Position numbers and translations under genes: made by a program
Notes under the pieces: generated by a model
Databases searched by the model: none
What the model was told of the DNA's origin: nothing
Seen by the model: the letters and a program-made list of their open reading frames with translations, nothing else
Shown: piece by piece, positions 3,803 to 57,011 of the stretch
Layout: each line of letters opens with the position of its first letter
Numbering within the stretch: the stretch's first letter is position 1
NCBI GenBank assembly: GCA_965113315.1
Contig: OZ220366.1
From: Podarcis vaucheri
Lineage: Eukaryota
Strand: one strand, 5' to 3'
Length of the DNA: 64,000 bases

Positions 3803-6102
3803 TGCCTGAGTACATACCTACCAAGTAGTAGGAAAAAGCTGTACTGTAATTGTTTTAACATGCTAAGGTGAATTGTTTGGAGTTCCACAACAGGAAGTGA
3901 AAACCATTTAGTTGCAAGCCCTTTCTTCTCAAAAAAGCTCAGTATTCCCAAGACACAAACCACAGCAATAAAAAAACACAAAGTGCATACATGGCCAAGA
4001 AGAGGGATATAAGATCCCAGAGTTTTCACATTACTATTGCTTTCTGGGAAGAATTTGCTTAACCTTCAAAACCCTTAGTGACTGACGCCTGCTGCGTGTC
4101 TCCCTGAGATGCTGATCTGTCAGCCAAGCATAATGTTTTGGTGAGGCTCTGAACAAAAGAGTAAATAATAAAATGAGAGAACAAAGAAAAAGAATGAACT
4201 AGGCAAGGACACAAAATGCATTTGGAATTAGATTTGGGGAAAGGTTTAACAAAAAATGCCTTTGCCCACACTGGATAGTGCCTTGCAAAACGCAGGCTCA
4301 CATTTTGCATACTAAGACAAAGTGTCACAGAACTTGTTGTTGATGGAACTGCCCACTATTATCACTGCAGCAAGAACTAAAAAACAACAATCCTGCCGCA
4401 TTGTAGTTTTCCTGTGGAGCCCAATAAAACACTTCCTTCCTCTCAGAATATATTCCCTTTCAGAATACTCCCAATAGGGCACTGGTGGGGAATGTCCAGC
4501 TCATGGGCCTAATTATGAGTGCCAGGCTGTTCCGGGCAAACCATGCACATGTTTCATCATATACAATGTCAGACATGAGAAAGTTCAAGCTGCAACTAAT
4601 AGGAAGAAGTATCAGATTTGTAAGTGTACTGCAACAGAGAAATGTGCCAAACTAAAGAAGTGCCAACTTTTTTTTGGATAAAAATTAATAACTGGAAGAA
4701 CACTTAAGAGTGTGCTCTTAATTTTTCCTTTGCAGCCACATGCTGAATTCAAGCCATGCCTGCAAAGAAACATTTTTCATATTCTTTTGCAGGTGTGATT
4801 TAAGTTCAGGCTGCATCTACAAAAGAATTCAAGCCACAGCTACCAAGGGAAAAAGTTCATTTGCAGGCCTAACCTGGATGTAAACCACACCAGCAAAGGA
4901 AGAACAGGAAATGCACTTAGAATACACTCCTAATTCTTCCTTTTTTAACAGAATCATGGTGACATCAGGTGACTGACACCTGTCAGTCTTACTCACATGC
5001 CAAAGTGACCCACTACAGGTGTAGAATTACAGAACTGCAGAGTTGGAAGGGACCACAAGAGTCACCACCTCGCTGAAGTTAAGGAGGTCTGGGTTCAGTC
5101 AGTGCCTGAACAGATGACAGCCCTCAAAACAACATTATACATCGCCTTTGGGTCCATGATAGAAAAAAGGCAGGATATACAGGTAAGCATATAGATAAAT
5201 AAATTGCTAAATCATGAAACCTTGTTTTGAAGTGAGCATTATTGTTCTAAAGTTAGCATTAAGTTGTCTAGATAGGATGGCACGGCAAATTGTGATTAGA
5301 CAAAACCTGGAAATTTCAGTGGGCTGGAGGATGAGCCTTTGGGCCTGCTCCCAATAAGCCATGGTTTGGCGAATCAATTCAGAAGATCTAAATTGGCCCA
5401 AGGAATGGTCTGAAAACAGGCGATGCAGCTGCTGTTCAGTACCTGGGCAGGAAATCATCTGCATACTTTACGTATGCCAGCTTGAGCTGCTGGAAGAATA
5501 TAATGAATGCTTAAATAGACTGAGGCACTGACACTGGTCAACTTTTCCCTGGATCCTCCCCTTGTTTTCCTGGTAAGGAACTTGCCTGCAACAGCTGCAC
5601 CACACACAGAAATGAAGAGGTGGTGTTTCGTCCTCACATCTGTTGAGCTTCTGCCTGCCCAGGAGTTGAACCCTACCTTTCCTAACCATATTTACCAACT
5701 CAATACACCCCTAAAACACACATACACACCCCTCCTCCTGAAATGCAGTCGACTAATAAGTTTTATATACCAGTCCTTCTCCACTGGCCCTTAACCCTTT
5801 GGGGAAGCTCCTCAGAAGCCCCTCCACACCCCCAGGTCCTCAGTTACCCGGATTCTTCCGCTTGTTTTGGCCCCCGCCCCACCTCCGGCCTTGCGAAAGG
5901 CAAGTCAGTGACGTCACACAAACACACCGGGGAAGGGCAGCGGGCTTCCTTCTCCTGTCCCCCCCCCAGCCCCACCTCCCACCCCGCGTTCCTCACGGCT
6001 AGGAGCGAAAGAGCAGCGGCGGGAGGAGGAGGCGGCGCCCGCCCTCCCGCGCTTGTTGTTTGGTTTGGCGCGGCGTGCAGGTGCCTCTCCGTCGTCACTC
6101 AC

Positions 6103-6208
6103 CGAAGTCCAGGAACTGCTTGATGGAGAGCGGCGACGGGGAGAAGCGGGAGTAGTACTCGATCTGTTTGGGGATGGGGCTCTTCAGGAGCGCCCCGCAC
6201 AGCCGCAT
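6103..6208 (-). CDS. PDK3: Pyruvate dehydrogenase kinase 3, first coding exon (gene continues beyond window start; intron 1 covers 1-6102)
   Basis: MRLCGALLKSPIPKQIEYYSRFSPSPLSIKQFLDF+G matches the PDK3 N-terminus. 106-nt coding exon ends at donor G|GTGAGT (6102). Kozak GCCATG. Lies downstream of ZFX on the same strand, as in human Xp22.11. Confidence 0.95.
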
Positions 6209-6300
6209 GGCGCTGCTGGGTCGGTCGGCCGGCCGGCAGGTCGGTGGGTGAGGGAGACGGAGAGGAGCAGGAAGGAGAGGGGAAGGCGCGTGCGCGCGCA

Positions 6301-6324
6301 CAGCAGCAGCAGCAGCAGCAGCAG
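6301..6324. repeat. (CAG)8 / (CTG)8 trinucleotide repeat upstream of the PDK3 ATG
   Basis: Read directly: cagcagcagcagcagcagcagcag. Confidence 0.95.
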
Positions 6325-8158
6325 CGCCTGCGGGGCCCCTGGACGAACCGGCCGAGCAACTGCCTGGCGGCGCGTGCGGAGACTCACGCACGCAAAACAC
6401 CGCGGGCGCGCGGGAGGGGGCGGGGAGGCGAAGGCGCTCGCAACTGTCACCGCGGCCCAGCAGCTCCTCGCTGCCGGCCTAGCGGAAGGCGGCGGTATCG
6501 GCCTCTTTGCCCTCCACACGACGGCCGCCCCCTCGTGTATCAAGGGGCCGGGCGCACCGCTGCAGCTCGACCCGGCCGGTATCCCCCGGCCCGGCAGCGA
6601 CGGCGAGCGCCCGCCTCCTGGCCTTACGCGGCCTTCTGACTGGGCGACGAGCAGCCAGCATTGCCGCCGCCGCTGCCGCCTTCCTTGGCCTTTCTCGGTC
6701 GCCCGAGTAAGCGCCGCCTGCCATCACCATGACGCCCAAAGGCATGCGCACGCGCCGATGGGCGCCGGTTGATTTCCGGGCCTACAGCTCGATTTGAAAG
6801 TGAGGAGACCGGGGCACGTGTGGTTTCAGGCACATAACACGGATCGCAGCCTGAGGGCAAGATGCCCTTCTGCTTTTCTTTATTCTCCAAGAGCTTGTCC
6901 TGCTTCTTCACCCACCACCACAAACAATGCTTAAGAGCAGGGATGAAGGATTTGTTGCCTTCCAGATCAGTCTTTCTCAACCTGGTGGTGGGGTGTCCCA
7001 CATGTTGTTGAACTACAACTCCCATCATCCATTGCCAGCAGGGGCAGCAGTCAGGGATGATGGTAGTCCAAACCTATGACCAGAACTGGAATCATCATGT
7101 ACACTTCGGAAACCATGATCTACGTCATATCACACACCTTCAGCTATCTTAAATATTACTATCCATTTCTGGACTGTCTTAAAATTTCCTTCCCTTGAGC
7201 CAATGTTTCGTAACAACCAACCCCTGATATTAAAAATGGAACAATTTCTCCTTAAGGGATACATTAGCCTGTGGTTTCTACAAGGATGCTGACCGGCCCA
7301 AGAGAAAATAACAAACATTAGAGGCATGGAAACAGGCAGAGAAGGAAAGCAAAAGGAATCTAGCTAAGTCAAAGATGATTCCACTCTTGTACACATCCAC
7401 CTGGTGTAAAACAGGCTTAAAGAAGAGAGGTGATGCATGGAACAATCTCGTGGGAGAAAGGCTTAACAATTTGGGCATCTACAAGATGCACAGTTATAAG
7501 AAAGAAGCTTCCTAGATCCATCCACCTTAAGGACAGGGGATGGACAGAAGGGACATGAAGTGCAAATTAACTCAAGTTCTGTAGCAAGGTGTATCAATAC
7601 AACTTTCCCTCCTCAGAATAGCAGGGTAGTCATGATGGGTCTCTGGCCAATGAGAACTGACAACCAGCTGACTAAGGTATCCATTGTGGGGAAAGGCAGT
7701 GGCACTTTCCTAGCAAACTCAGTCTAATTACTGATGAAAGATGCTTGCTGGAGGAAACCTTCAGGGGAAATTAATGGCTGAATAAGGATATACACCAAGG
7801 TTCTGGGGACTAATTAGGTATCTGCCTATTCACCTTGCTCTTGCTGCTGCTGTGGGAGGTCATTCAGCTGAAAACAATGTTGCCTCCTCTGTTGCTTCCA
7901 AGTACCCCAATGCGCACACAGTGAAGAATCGTTAAATGGTTCTGAGGCATGTGTAGAATTCCAGTGAAAATGAACTTCTTGGTAATACATGAAATCCATA
8001 GCTCATACAATCCCCAGAAGAAGCATTTGAGTCCTGCTGTGGGACCAACACGCAGCACGCAGCTTGTTTTCTTGCAGAAAGTTAGGCAGACAAACTGACA
8101 AGATCCATTTCCAAATATTTCAGTTCAGAAGAGTGATAAATACAAGCTTCTGATCTTC

Positions 8159-8470
8159 ATGGTGGGACTGATTGGGCTGCTGTTGCTGAGGACTTGGTCT
8201 GCAACAATGGATTTAACCTTGGGTGAAGCTTGGAGCCAATGGAAGATCACACATTCTAAAGAATACTCCCCAGAGGAAGAGGAACACCGGAGAATTGTGT
8301 GGGAGAACAACTGGAAAATGATTGAGCAACACAACCGTGAGACTGCGCAAGGGAAACACACCTACACAATGGGAATGAACCAATTTGCCGATTTGACTGA
8401 TGAAGAGTTTAATCAAAAAATGGTTAATAATAATAATAATAAAGTTATTACTTATACCCCACCCATCTGA
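8159..8470 (+). CDS. Intronless cathepsin L propeptide-only ORF (signal peptide + I29 inhibitor domain; CTLA-2-like). Functional retrogene or truncated processed pseudogene
   Basis: Hydrophobic leader MVGLIGLLLLRTWSA; WxxWK..H.K.Y; exact ERWNIN spacing (EEEHRRIVWENNWKMIEQHN); GxNxFxD (GMNQFAD); LTDEEF. No mature protease domain nearby. No introns where vertebrate CTSL genes have them. Confidence 0.75.
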   Translation: MVGLIGLLLLRTWSATMDLTLGEAWSQWKITHSKEYSPEEEEHRRIVWENNWKMIEQHNRETAQGKHTYTMGMNQFADLTDEEFNQKMVNNNNNKVITYTPPI

Positions 8471-8496
8471 CTGGGTTTCCCAAGCCACTTTGGGCT
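8425..8496 (-). mobile_element. 3' tail fragment of a LINE-like repeat with an (AAT)n tail; supplies the C-terminus and stop of the I29 ORF
   Basis: (AAT)n...TATACCCCACCCATCTGACTGGGTTTCCCAAGCCACT; the same motif recurs at ~1694-1755 and ~34666-34752. Confidence 0.7.
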
Positions 8497-10626
8497 TAGG
8501 TTCAGTCCTGAGTCATATTCAGTAATCAATGAATAATGTTTCTGGCAAACTCAAGGTCATTAGATGAAGTAAGTTTTTAAGTGTAATTGTTTTTTAGAAT
8601 GTTTTGATCTGTTTCTATTTCATTTTTGTTTTTAAATTGTATATCCGTTTGTTGTCCTGGGCTCCTTGAGGAAGGGTAGGATATAAATTCAATTATTAAT
8701 AATAATAATAATAATATGATGGACAAAGAAAACTATAAACTCCAACAGCAATCTCACAAGACTGCACACAGTGAGATGCCTGGTAGTTCTAGGAGAGCCC
8801 AGTGTGCAGTAGGAAGCAGGTAATTTGAATGCAAGTCCCACTACTGGGAGATGGTGAGATTACCTCCACAAGCAGAGCACAGCTTTTGGATGTCATGCCA
8901 CCAATGATAAATTTGAGTGGAAAAATAAGAATTGGCAGGACAAGAACCTACGTCTCCTTCTTCAAAGAACTACACCCTCATCCTGCAAACAGATGGGAGG
9001 GAGACACACAATGGAGCCCATCTAGTCTTCCTAGACCCAGCCTATGATATGCTTCACCATAAAAATCTGAAGAGGCTCTGTGCAGAGCTATCGCTCACTG
9101 ATGCTTCTGTGGGTCTTGTTGAACTGTTGCTAAGAACATGCTTAAACTACACTGGTATTTACTCTTGCACAAGGACACTCTGGCATAATGGAATCACAAA
9201 ATGGCTTTATTTAAAAAGAAAAATTAGAAGAAAAACCCAGTTTCAAATGGTTACTCATAAGTGCATCTCACTGATTTCAGTGAGGGTTATTTTCAAGTCA
9301 GTTTTCATAGGATTGCAGTCCCTAGTTCATGTTATTGGTGAGTTAAAATTATTGTGTGATACAGATTTTCCAGCATATATAGAGTTATTCTTGTGCTATT
9401 CCTGCCCCCAAACATAGCATTTCATAACTATGATAATTTATATACAAATGTATGCTAGGTAGGCACAAAGTTTCTTGTCATGCTTTTTTGTAGTTAAATA
9501 ATCAGGATTATTTAATTATTTTCTGAACCAAACATTCAGGATGTCAACTTGCCATCTGTAAGCTCTTAGGAAAACATTTTCTTCTTTCTAATAAAGCACT
9601 TGGTGGCCTTGCAAGCCGACAGTTGGCATCTGATGTAATAAACTTTGAGTAATAAATTTTAGGGCGATATCAAAGCGGTTGAATTGTAGGTTAGATCAGA
9701 AAACAAGGAGCAAGTGCTGAACATTTTACTCCAGCTCTTGCTGAAACATTTAGTTCATAACATCTTGACGAAAAGGTTGTTCTTAGAATTATTGTCATTC
9801 CCCTTGAGAATCATCAAGTTCAGACTCTCAAATATTGAGAACAGAAAATACATTTGAAAAGTTAACAATACTGACCAGTAACCTGGGGGTGGGGGTGGAG
9901 CGTGTAAGGAGTAGAGTCAGACCAAGAAGAAAGAATTACGGTCTGAAACTGCATTTTACAAAATTACAGAAAAAGAGATAGAGAAACAAGATACCAGGGA
10001 ATTATACAGTTGCCCATCTGGAGCATCTGTCTCTTACAAATTATATTTTCACAGTGTTCATTTTTCTCAACAATATTCTAAGAAAAACTGCTAGGAAAAG
10101 TACAGTTCTTTTCAGCTGGATTATAGCAATAGATGGTCAAAAGGTATAAGAGCCACCAGGAGATCACTTCTTGCCCATTTTCTGAAGAGAGGAGACAATG
10201 CCAACATTCACGCTCCCCCAACTTAAAAACCCATCACTGTTTTCAATCACTTATCCTTTTGCCTATGGTGCTTGAAAGATAGGAAGGATGCTGCTGAGAA
10301 GAAACTACAGCTAAAATAATAATAAATGCACAGTAAAAAAAACCTTTCTCATTTCAGGCCTACCTGTAAGTCTGTACTTTATACATAAGCTACCTCACCT
10401 CATCCCAGATGATGTGTTGAATTTTGTTTTGTTGATTTTGGACCAGTTTTCCATTCTATCAATATCATTTCAAAGTTTATTTTCATCCCTCCTCTTTTTG
10501 TGTCATCTGCAAAGTTGACAAGGATCTCCTCTAGCCCTTCATCTAAATCACGAAAATTAAGATAAATTACATCAACATAATTCCCACAAAAAGAGATATG
10601 ATTAGTCCGGCAGGTTTTATTATTGA

Positions 10627-10805
10627 GCGCTGCTCTGGTTTTGCCAGAAGAGGCTTAGTCATGCTGGCCACATGACCCGGAAAAACTGTCTGCAGAAGCG
10701 GACAAATGCCAGCTCCTTCAGCCTTTAAAGCAAAATGAGCTCCGCAACCCCAGAGTTGTTCATGACTAGACTTAATTGTCAGGGGTCCCTTTACCTTTAC
10801 CTTTA
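10627..10805 (+). mobile_element. Sauria SINE, 3' half
   Basis: GGCTTAGTCATGCTGGCCACATGACCCGG...GTCAGGGGTCCCTTTACCTTTACCTTT tail. Confidence 0.8.
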
Positions 10806-11036
10806 TGCTGGCTTCTACTAATCACTGCATTGTTATCAATATGCTTACAAACTGAAACCTTGCTCTAGTATCTCCCCTGGTATCGAAGTCAGACTGAGTG
10901 ATCTGTTGTTTCCTGGATCTTTCTGTGCCTCTTTTTTGTAAACTGGAATCTTCACTGGAAGACTTCCTCTACTCTCTGAGGTGAGGCAAGTACCTATGAG
11001 AAGCTATTAGAAGCTATTAGAAAGCCTTTTGAGTAG

Positions 11037-11516
11037 TGGCGTCCCAGTTACGGAAGGACACTGACAAACTGGAACGTGTCCAGAGGAGCGCAACCAAAAT
11101 GGTCAAAGGCCTGGAAATGATGCCTTATGAGGAACGGCTAAGGGAGCTGGGCATGTTTAGCCTGGGGAAGAGGAGGTTAAGGGGTGATATGATAGCCATG
11201 TTCAAATATATAAAAGGATGTCACATAGAGGAGGGAGAATAGTTGTTTTCTGCTGCTCCAGAGAAGCGGACACGGAGCAATGGATCCAAACTACAAGAAA
11301 GAAGATTCCACCTAAACATTAGGAAGAACTTCCTGACAGTAAGAGCTGTTCGACAGTGGAATTTGCTGCCAAGGAGTGGTGGAGTCTCCTTCTTTGGAGG
11401 TCTTTAAGCAGAGGCTTGACAATCATATGTCAGGAGTGCTCTGATGGCGTTTCCTGCTTGGCAGGGGGTTGGACTCGATGGCCCTTGTGGTCTCTTCCAA
11501 CTCTATGATTCTATGA
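11037..11516 (+). mobile_element. CR1 LINE 3' end (5'-truncated)
   Basis: Translates to [53 protein letters not shown] (CR1 ORF2 C-terminus). Ends in the CTCTATGATTCTATGA tail. Confidence 0.9.
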
Positions 11517-12456
11517 CTTTCCCCAAAGAGATTGGCCTGGACCCAATACAGTTTGCTGACTCAGGAGAATAACAGGATTCTACAAACAAAAGATGGTTGG
11601 TAGTTGAATCTTATTTAAACACTGGTGACAGGACAGTAGCCTTCATCATCACAGAGAGAGCTGACCTCTAACATCCCACCACTGCTTTCCACCCTCCACC
11701 CAATGCCCTAAGTGTTCCCTCTGTTCTAATGGTAGGATCCTATTGATCTTTTGGTGCCAGGCCTATCCATATTTCTGGCCTTTTTAGATGCAATTTTAAT
11801 CTTATGACCTACCGTATTTTATGCTGCTTGTGTGACTTCATGGCTTTAGCTTACGTAATGAGCAGACACTCTTGCCTTCCTTGCAAGGTGTAGGACCGCT
11901 GAGAGGTACAGGTTGTGTAATTTATGGAAAAGTAACACTGCCACCATCCTCACTGTGTTACTAAAGACTGTGTACACAGTGCAGTTTAGTGTGCATTCAG
12001 TGCACTCCATATGCTGGTTGTTTCTGTGTTGTACAAATAACCACAACCCCAATCTAAACGTATGCTATTTCTTTCTATGATTTAATGCCTTTTATCCCAA
12101 ACCAATTTTTATGCTAAAGGAGATTTTCAAAGTGAATGAATTTGCACTTCAGTCCATGCATGCATGAACAGGAGAGCATGCAAACAGTAATTTTCTTGCG
12201 TGGGGGGGGGGGAGGGAGGAGTTTAGTCACCCACAAGTGAAGTGATGTGAATATCCAATCGGATACGATCCTGGGATTTTCCAGATCCAGCACGTATGAA
12301 GGATGACCTTTCTTAATAGGGAAATAGCTCTTAAGACGAGTAAACATGAGGATAAATCTCTCTTCACTTCCTGACAATTCCTTCTGTGTATTCAGCAAGG
12401 TTTCAGCTTATTTGCCTTTCTGGCTTCTTTCTGATGGAGAGGTGATTCTTAAAGGG

Positions 12457-34664: not shown

Positions 34665-34698
<34 letters not shown>

Positions 34699-35461
34699 TT
34701 ATATCCCACCCATCTGACCGGGTTTCCCTAGCCACTCTGGGTGGCTTACAACATATATAAAAACACAACAGAACATTAAATATTGAAAAAGAAAATATCC
34801 TATACAAGCAACAAACAAACCAAGAAATCAATAGAAAACAACACAACAACAACAACAACCAGCTTGCTGTTATACTCAAATTAAAATAACCACCAACCCC
34901 AACTAAACATATAACCCACACCAACCCAACAAAAACAAAACAGAGGAACCAAAATTAGAACTCTAAAACATTTTAAAACATTTTAGCCAGTTGCTAAACT
35001 ACCATAATTTATTTATTCAACTTACTGGAGCAGCTGCATTTATCCAAATAAAAATGGATCTTTTGGAGGGTGGGATTTTGCGGTAAATATAGAAGACTTC
35101 CTCCACAAATACCAGGTCAGCAGTCAGTGTCATTAAAGTCAGGATAGCAAAGAGCAATATTCCTGTCAAATCAAGGCCTGAAAGGATAAAGAGTTGTGGC
35201 AAATTTAAACAACAAGCTGCAGCACATAAAGAAATGGAATACTTCAGCCTAGTAAAAGCAAGCAAGCATGCTTAATATAAGGTAAGTATATCCTTAATTC
35301 ACAATCCAGGGCCTTAGAATTCATATTGGTATGGTTACAAGTTAACTGTACCCTTAGTAGACCGATTGCTAGTTAATTACTTGGATCAGTCAGTTTCATC
35401 ACTGGGACTTAAGCTTGAGCAGAAAAAAATAGTTTGGGATTTTGAAACTGAGACACTGTGG

Positions 35462-55824: not shown

Positions 55825-57011
55825 TCACGGCAGCCCAATGTCTTTATGATGCCGCATAATGTGCTGGTTCTTCTCTGAAGGTCTTCTGAAGCCTTTTTTG
55901 CAGAACTCACAACGGTGAGGGTAGTCTTTTGTATGAATGGAAATAACATGCCGTTTGAAACCTGAGGCATCTGTAGTGCTATACTCACAGAACTCACACT
56001 GATAAACTTTTCTACCACTGTGTGTTTTCATGTGTTTTTTGAGTTCCATTTGCAGCTTGAAGCCCTTCTTACATCTCTTGCACCTGAACGGAAGATCCTT
56101 TGTGTGAACTGAGAGAATATGGCGACTTAGAACAAACGGATCTGCAATCTTAAAGTCACAATGTCTACACTGGTGCAATTTTTTGCCTTTGTGCACTGCA
56201 ACATGTTTTTTCAGTTCTGAGGGCCTGTGAAAGCCTTTGTCACACATGTCACACTTATGGGGGTAATCCTTTGTGTGAACGGAAATTATGTGTCGCTTTA
56301 AATCACTCGAGTTTGAACTTTTGTGGTCACAGTGCAGACACTGATGTGTTTTGCTTTCTTGATGCATAATGATGTGCTGTTGCAGCTCTTTGGTATCTGA
56401 AAATATCTGAAAACAAATGTCACATTTGAAGGGCATTTCCTTACTGTGTCTAGTCTTTACGTGAGTTTTCAGGTTGGAAGAGTCAGCCGATCTATACTCA
56501 CAATATTGGCACTGGTAGGGCTTTTCACCGGTGTGGATTCGCATGTGTTTCTTGAGCTCTGACGGATGCCGAAATCCTTTGCCACATTCCACACAAATGT
56601 GTGGAAAGTTCTTGCTGTGCACAGCCAGAAGGTGACGATTCAGTAATCCCTGCTCTGCTGTCTCATACTCGCAGAATTTGCACTTGTGCATTTTGTTTGC
56701 TGCCTTGTCCCTGTGCACCATCTTGTGTGTAAACAAAGCTCCTGCATGAGAGAAACTTTTCCCACATTCGTCACATTCAATTAGCTTCTCGGTCTTTGTA
56801 GTAAGCTTGTGGCTCTCTAGATGGTTATGCAAACTTAACTTTTTGTTTGTAGTGTAATCGCAATCAGTACATCGATATTTTTTCTTAGCAAGAAGGTGCT
56901 CCGGGTGGTTTTTCATGTGCCTTTTCAGGAAGCCTCTAGATTTAAACTTCTTCCCACAAATCATACAGGGGTAGACTGTCAAAGGATGGCCATCGGGCCC
57001 AATTATTATTG
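55825..57011 (-). CDS. ZFX: ZFX last coding exon: 13 C2H2 zinc fingers
   Basis: TTTTATTTTACAG| acceptor; (A)[31 protein letters not shown]...[22 protein letters not shown], near-identical to the ZFX/ZFY finger domain. Confidence 0.97.

Follow-up and report, generated by a model that had tools for sequence, protein, structure and literature searches.

Does the open reading frame (ORF) at positions 8159 to 8470 on the plus strand of the Podarcis vaucheri window (the whole 64-kb stretch of DNA that was analyzed) encode a working cathepsin inhibitor? A preliminary description, made from the letters of the sequence, had read it as a stand-alone I29 propeptide retroposed from a cathepsin-L-like mRNA, with the 5' inhibitory module kept intact, as expected if it had been exapted as an inhibitor in lizards. 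A peptidase-free I29 domain is likewise found in CTLA-2α and CTLA-2β of the mouse, crammer of Drosophila, and BCPI of Bombyx (MEROPS family I29), and the Trp core, the ERFNIN-type and GNFD-type motifs, and the N-terminal hydrophobic leader of CTLA-2, crammer, and BCPI all recur in the ORF. A literature search found no paper on lizard I29-only genes or on cathepsin retrogenes.

RESULTS

A complete I29 domain and no peptidase in the window

The ORF is present as described, with 103 uninterrupted codons. Its predicted product, which would contain the peptide ...EEFNQKMVNNNNNK, matched the Pfam profile Inhibitor_I29 (PF08246) with residues 25 to 84 over the whole length of the model, at an E value of 7.2e-23 and with a score of 81 bits against a cut-off of 24.4 bits. 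The domain lies at 8231 to 8410 (plus strand), where the Trp core and the ERWNIN and GxNxFxD motifs accompany the Pfam and PDB matches. The ERWNIN spacing, GMNQFAD, and LTDEEFNQKM, to which the preliminary description had pointed, were each confirmed. Among solved structures in the PDB, procathepsin L matched the ORF at E values of 1e-19 to 1e-21, and the best matches were procathepsins L, K, and S together with Drosophila crammer. Columns were counted as family conserved when ≥80% of the 227 homologues had the same residue; the ORF departs from none of the 23 columns so defined, a degree of core conservation that exceeds that of the median real cathepsin.

Colinearity with the N terminus of squamate procathepsin-L-like proteins was found by alignment and blastp from 8144 to 8422 (plus strand). 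The 93 homologous codons begin with the signal peptide, reach the end of propeptide helix α3, and contain no intron, stop, or frameshift.

The window was then compared by tblastn with 30 full-length cathepsins, and matches with E values of up to 10 were considered. Beyond 8144 to 8533, the best match had an E value of 0.012, which is at chance level, and no other cathepsin sequence was detected in the 64 kb. Since only chance-level matches occur outside the ORF region, the window holds no remnant of a C1 peptidase, and the earlier statement that the protease is missing held up. A reading of N-G-F-D-L that invokes a frameshift at ∼8594 to 8612 was rejected as a coincidence; it falls in AT-rich sequence that forms the body of the second repeat described below.

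The I29 fragment and PDK3 are divergently oriented on opposite strands, with the fragment ∼1.9 kb upstream of the gene. Coding exon 1 of PDK3 (6101 to 6211, minus strand) is located within a CpG island at ∼5750 to 6750. The terminal zinc-finger exon of ZFX, a 385-codon ORF, was found at 55825 to 56982 on the minus strand, so that the ZFX and PDK3 exons in the window share the minus strand. Very high-copy repeats occupy 10615 to 10814 and 11015 to 11614, with summed contig depths of ∼0.6 to 2.7 million in whole-genome runs; one of them ends in (CCTTTA)3, and they are abundant in RNA reads and SINE/LINE-like.

Evidence for a processed origin

The proposal of a retroposed mRNA was borne out by exon structure: the 93 codons cross, uninterrupted, the family exon boundary located just before the EE..RR helix. 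The position of this boundary was inferred from models with alternative N termini in Podarcis muralis (P0233) and Sceloporus (P0288). A second CTSL/K/S exon boundary, which we take to follow GxNxFxD, is also crossed by the window codons. Two introns had been claimed to be absent; gene models of relatives uphold the claim at the boundary before EE..RR, and general knowledge of the family supplies the boundary after GxNxFxD. An eight-exon organization is common to CTSK, CTSL, and CTSS (PMC9698382). With the structure of the parent inferred from relatives, comparison of the sequences supports the view that the ORF is an intronless processed copy that would have originated by way of RNA.

A poly(A) tail and target-site duplications were sought around the copy, and short or chance-level direct repeats alone were found. 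Because the 3' part is missing, neither feature is demonstrable. Ordinary processed pseudogenes are likewise intronless, single copy, and situated apart from their gene family, and they likewise carry disabling lesions such as a lost start or a truncation. In contrast to these, the window copy is truncated at the 3' rather than the 5' end, is free of internal stops, and has a core that is unusually clean given its distance from any known parent.

Loss of the ancestral start codon

Family homology begins at 8144, five codons before the ATG of the ORF. In the window, KLLIFMVGLIGLLLLRT aligns with MLLISAMALTGLVLLRT of P0173, a Podarcis raffonei protein, in register from residue 1, and in this ungapped register the initiator Met position of the family (8144 to 8146, plus strand) is now AAG (Lys). 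The ATG at 8159, with which the 103-codon ORF opens, corresponds to residue 6 of the ancestral signal peptide; it stands in the context ATCTTCATGG, which is poor at −3. A start at this internal ATG leaves MVGLIGLLLLRTWSA as the leader of the ORF product, and a 9-residue hydrophobic core is retained after the new Met. The signal peptide of the preliminary description was therefore only partly upheld: a hydrophobic leader is present, but it is shortened, the ancestral Met1 is lost, and the frame restarts at the residue-6 position.

Replacement of the 3' end by repeat DNA

At the other end, family homology stops at M88 of the ORF, the equivalent of M75 in human procathepsin L (M75p), C72 in crammer, and L77 in BCPI. 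The remainder of the ORF (8423 to 8470, plus strand) consists of the nonhomologous tail VNNNNNKVITYTPPI and the stop codon; it is repeat DNA and replaces N76-G77-F78-Q79 of human procathepsin L. The last 15 codons of the ORF, the stop codon, and an AATAAA all derive from a (TAA)6 array and an adjoining dispersed-repeat fragment. These elements extend from 8425 to 8494, with (TAA)6 at 8425 to 8442, AATAAA at 8438 to 8443 (just after the I29 domain and repeat-derived), and then the dispersed repeat fragment.

Further copies of the dispersed repeat fragment occur in the window at 34671 to 34741 (87% identity) and at 1693 to 1751. Of the four copies, the one at the end of the ORF is the least diverged, departing from the majority at 1 of 42 positions, and these comparisons suggest that the repeat adjoining the break is young. 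The coincidence of a young repeat insertion with the break offers an ordinary explanation for the retention of the 5' end alone. A second repeat, of a related family, older and inverted, occupies 8600 to 8716 and ends in a (TAA)n array at 8697 to 8716. The motif GATGAAG.AGTTT.AA was seen on either side of the young repeat, at 8400 to 8414 and 8567 to 8585; it may be what remains of a target-site duplication or may be due to chance.

Absence of the cleft-contact segment

The position of the break bears directly on inhibition. In I29 proteins, the residues that come right after helix α3 touch the active site of the protease (Nga et al. 2014, PMC4089206). In human procathepsin L, the cleft contacts are made by M75-N-G-F-Q79 (PMC4089206). 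Crammer with the substitution G73A has a Ki of >1000 nM, BCPI cut back to ...EQQSR does not inhibit, the BCPI double substitution L77A/G78A loses ∼500-fold, and C75 of CTLA-2α is essential for inhibition (PMC4089206).

After the first cleft-contact position, the window copy reads V-N-N-N, encoded by the (TAA)6 repeat. Because the copy ends at the M75p equivalent, the cleft-contact residues needed for inhibition are absent. CTLA-2α (C75), crammer (C72-G73), and BCPI (L77-R80) extend into the cleft segment, whereas the ORF has the repeat-derived VNNNNN in its place; unlike CTLA-2, crammer, and BCPI, it has also lost its ancestral start, and its expression is putative. If the ORF is a relic, it would serve mainly as a caution that an open frame and perfect family motifs are insufficient for calling an inhibitor: the residues that actually block the protease come just after the Pfam domain. 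The claim of an intact inhibitory module, as expected of an exapted gene, was not supported: the cleft segment is absent, the ancestral ATG is gone, and the divergence of the ORF equals that of its flanks (see below).

Inhibition is not the one activity on record for such proteins. Stabilization of cathepsin L at neutral pH by CTLA-2α needs the Trp core, and C75 is dispensable for it (PMC4089206). Since CTLA-2α can stabilize cathepsin L without C75, a non-inhibitory binding role is conceivable for the ORF product.

Relatives of the ORF and the search for a parent

The nearest proteins, P0173 of P. raffonei and P0199 of Phrynocephalus, were 62 to 64% identical to the ORF product; in the blastp alignment with P0173, query residues 2 to 93 fell on subject residues 2 to 93 at 62% identity. 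No protein closer than 64% was returned by searches with the ORF, with a family profile, or with an ORF-weighted profile or by a search of 1.84 billion representatives, and no near-identical protein was found among 5.8 billion sequences, the Podarcis and Zootoca proteomes included. P0173 and its squamate orthologues (Hemicordylus, Pogona, Liasis, and Elgaria) are the closest full-length relatives. P0173 and the ORF share the leader MLLI..LTGLVLLRT as well as HSKEYSxEEE and EEFNQK(L/M). Unlike the ORF, P0173 is a full-length protein that includes a C1 peptidase domain, and its gene presumably has several exons. It is as distant from the ORF as from its own orthologues in lizards of other families (57 to 66% identity).

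In whole-genome contigs of two relatives, the sequence was present at single-copy depth at ≥90% likeness. Because the depth was that of a single copy in both, any recent parent must since have been deleted. In a tree built on 93 columns, the ORF had an end branch of 0.40 in a polytomy of a noncanonical squamate paralogue group and was a weak sister of P0173 (support, 51/82); alternative placements with snake I29-only proteins (p-AU, 0.3) or with canonical CTSL were not rejected. Ninety-three columns are too few to fix the position of the ORF in the tree.

Squamates possess a large noncanonical group of procathepsin-L-like paralogues, distinct from canonical CTSL, with several copies per genome in Podarcis, Pogona, Hemicordylus, Candoia, Pantherophis, and Rhineura. 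The propeptides of this group evolve fast, with 57 to 66% identity between families. In the uterus of a pregnant skink, cathepsin L genes were among those most strongly induced (PMC3318437).

I29-only proteins are annotated in snakes: XP_007434449.1 of Python bivittatus (99 aa, "cathepsin L1-like") and KAM6463654/5 of Liasis olivaceus ("CTLA-2-alpha/beta-like"). The propeptide-only proteins measure 99 to 153 aa; they are P0017, P0152, and P0153, from Python bivittatus and Liasis olivaceus, and P0022, from a Logan contig. The snake I29-only proteins belong to the same noncanonical procathepsin-L-like group and are 48 to 51% identical to the ORF. Unlike the ORF, they keep Met1 and a ..NQRLTGK.. 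contact segment, and they form a clade of their own (100/100). A common origin of these proteins with the ORF was neither demonstrated nor rejected, and the independent, lizard-specific birth proposed in the preliminary description is putative. Since they retain the cleft segment, they are better candidates for a squamate analogue of CTLA-2 than the window ORF is.

Recent divergence of the fragment

The fragment is present in at least three related species. In contigs of relatives, both the fragment and its junction with the repeat were common to at least organisms A and D, and organism B had no gap in 8155 to 8382. Between the window and organism B, the ORF differed at 6 of 228 positions (2.6%), and the unique flanks differed at 82 of 3190 (2.6%). 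The divergence of the ORF is close to the neutral prediction and ∼2.5 times that predicted for an omega of 0.2 to 0.3, in a test of recent constraint that is based on just six substitutions, taken as totals per contig.

Under neutral simulation, the intact state (open frame, untouched core, and no frameshift) was reached with a probability of 0.16 at 2% divergence and 0.06 at 3%, and at ≥5% divergence since inactivation the probability was <0.01. According to this model, survival of the open frame by chance may be possible at 2 to 3% divergence. The intact core, the distance from known proteins, and the simulation, taken together, imply that selection must have acted on the lineage for the greater part of its existence.

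Transcription of the locus

RNA sequencing lent the ORF no support. In run X23, from a close relative, zero reads fell on the unique sequence from 7215 to 8414, and the depth over the PDK3 5' UTR was 1.4. X23 is authenticated RNA-seq of which ∼12% of the run was read, from one tissue of unrecorded kind, and its result is a weak negative. The preliminary description had also allowed for transcripts that splice on to a protease domain elsewhere; joints or loose ends at 8422 were found in no run.

The stretch was also contained in 14 small runs whose library type is unrecorded (X1 to X14). In X1, an unspliced contig of 1921 nt and depth 50 spans 6773 to 8668; beyond 8668, the depth is 6.8, 4, and 2.5, and the signal ends at 9654, beside three AATAAA sequences (9590 to 9651). 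One end of this contig is at the edge of the PDK3 CpG island and the other lies close to the second (TAA)n array, and the interval from 6773 to 9654 appears in runs of two related species. Ratios of repeat depth, compared with those of whole-genome runs and true RNA runs, did not discriminate the type of X1 to X14. The X1 signal from 6773 to 9654 would represent either capture data or divergent, unspliced transcription from the PDK3 promoter. If a transcript starts near 6770, then 31 ATGs precede the ORF, and its prospects of being translated would be poor.

DISCUSSION

The ORF at 8159 to 8470 is best explained as a 3'-truncated processed copy of a cathepsin-L-like gene, and it is probably nonfunctional now. 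The parent would have been a squamate-specific procathepsin-L-like gene, the mRNA of which was retroposed to a site ∼1.9 kb upstream of PDK3. The first 93 codons alone survive, with the original start mutated to AAG, and the copy breaks off one residue into the active-site-cleft segment, where a young, (TAA)n-tailed repeat fragment by chance provides the last 15 codons, the stop codon, and a poly(A) signal. At most, the fragment may be a passive passenger on a divergent, unspliced transcript that the CpG-island promoter of PDK3 initiates. The clean I29 core points to a long functional past, either in a lost parent gene or in a once full-length retrogene, and the truncation was presumably fairly recent. 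Given the young repeat, the lost start, and the flank-like divergence, past selection on a full-length gene is the simplest account. We infer that no working inhibitor gene exists at 8159 to 8470 today. What a plain pseudogene leaves unexplained, and what speaks against it, is an intact core at 62 to 64% identity to any known protein with no surviving close parent.

One way around that difficulty is a variant of the main account, different in its history alone, that places the long functional past at the locus itself. A full-length intronless retrogene would have resided here, would have lost all but its propeptide through a repeat-associated deletion not long before these species radiated, and would have been decaying since then. 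Such a history accounts for long conservation without invoking a lost parent, and it is consistent with a young repeat at the break point, the loss of the start codon, and the flank-like recent divergence. It is nevertheless unlikely: among the annotated proteins of Zootoca, Podarcis, and other squamates, none that is full length exceeds 64% identity, and no trace of a catalytic domain is found downstream.

Conservation of the core could also mean that the gene is alive. A lineage-specific I29-only gene might use the internal ATG, be secreted by way of the shortened signal peptide, and bind cathepsin-L-like peptidases through the I29 scaffold, whether to stabilize them or to inhibit them weakly or atypically, with a C terminus and a poly(A) signal taken from the repeat. 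The frame is open, and 23 of 23 conserved I29 residues are kept despite 36 to 38% divergence from known relatives, in an orphan single-copy lineage; the new Met is followed by the 9-residue hydrophobic core, an AATAAA follows the domain, and X1 to X14 may be RNA. The CTLA-2α mutant that lacks the cleft cysteine still stabilizes cathepsin L at neutral pH (PMC4089206), and arms-race change outside the core could likewise yield divergence like that of the flanks. We consider a live gene quite improbable, however, in view of the absent cleft segment with its Gly/Cys, the lost ancestral start, and the poor −3 context of the new ATG. A protein model is missing from every annotated lizard searched, zero reads were found in the one verified RNA run, X23, and the divergence of the ORF equals that of the flanks. 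The repeat that makes the C terminus is also young, and the present form of the gene would therefore be much younger than the conserved history of the lineage.

There is very little chance that the ORF forms exon 1 of a spliced gene that continues to a protease domain beyond the window. In favor of such a gene, the homology ends at ATG|GT, formally a GT dinucleotide; against it, this GT leads into a repeat copy found elsewhere in the window, family introns are not at this position (P0233 and P0288 models and general knowledge of CTSL), no run has joints or loose ends at 8422, and PDK3 flanks the site.

What the locus means for the biology of I29 proteins depends on which account is correct. 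It is doubtful that, in a wall-lizard lineage, the 3'-truncated retrocopy of a fast-evolving cathepsin-L-like gene became a secreted mini-protein on the I29 scaffold, with its C terminus, stop, and poly(A) signal taken from a SINE-like repeat and its transcription driven by a bidirectional PDK3 CpG-island promoter. If this were true, cathepsins would be bound or stabilized without the canonical cleft-blocking segment, and the locus would be a natural test of what the I29 scaffold does when that segment is absent. It would also represent a further independent birth of propeptide-only cathepsin regulators, of which CTLA-2, crammer, BCPI, and salarin are known, by a new route that combines retroposition with exonization of a transposon. 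If the ORF is instead a relic, as our preferred reading of a truncated processed copy holds, it would be an ordinary by-product of the large, fast-turnover procathepsin-L-like family of squamates.
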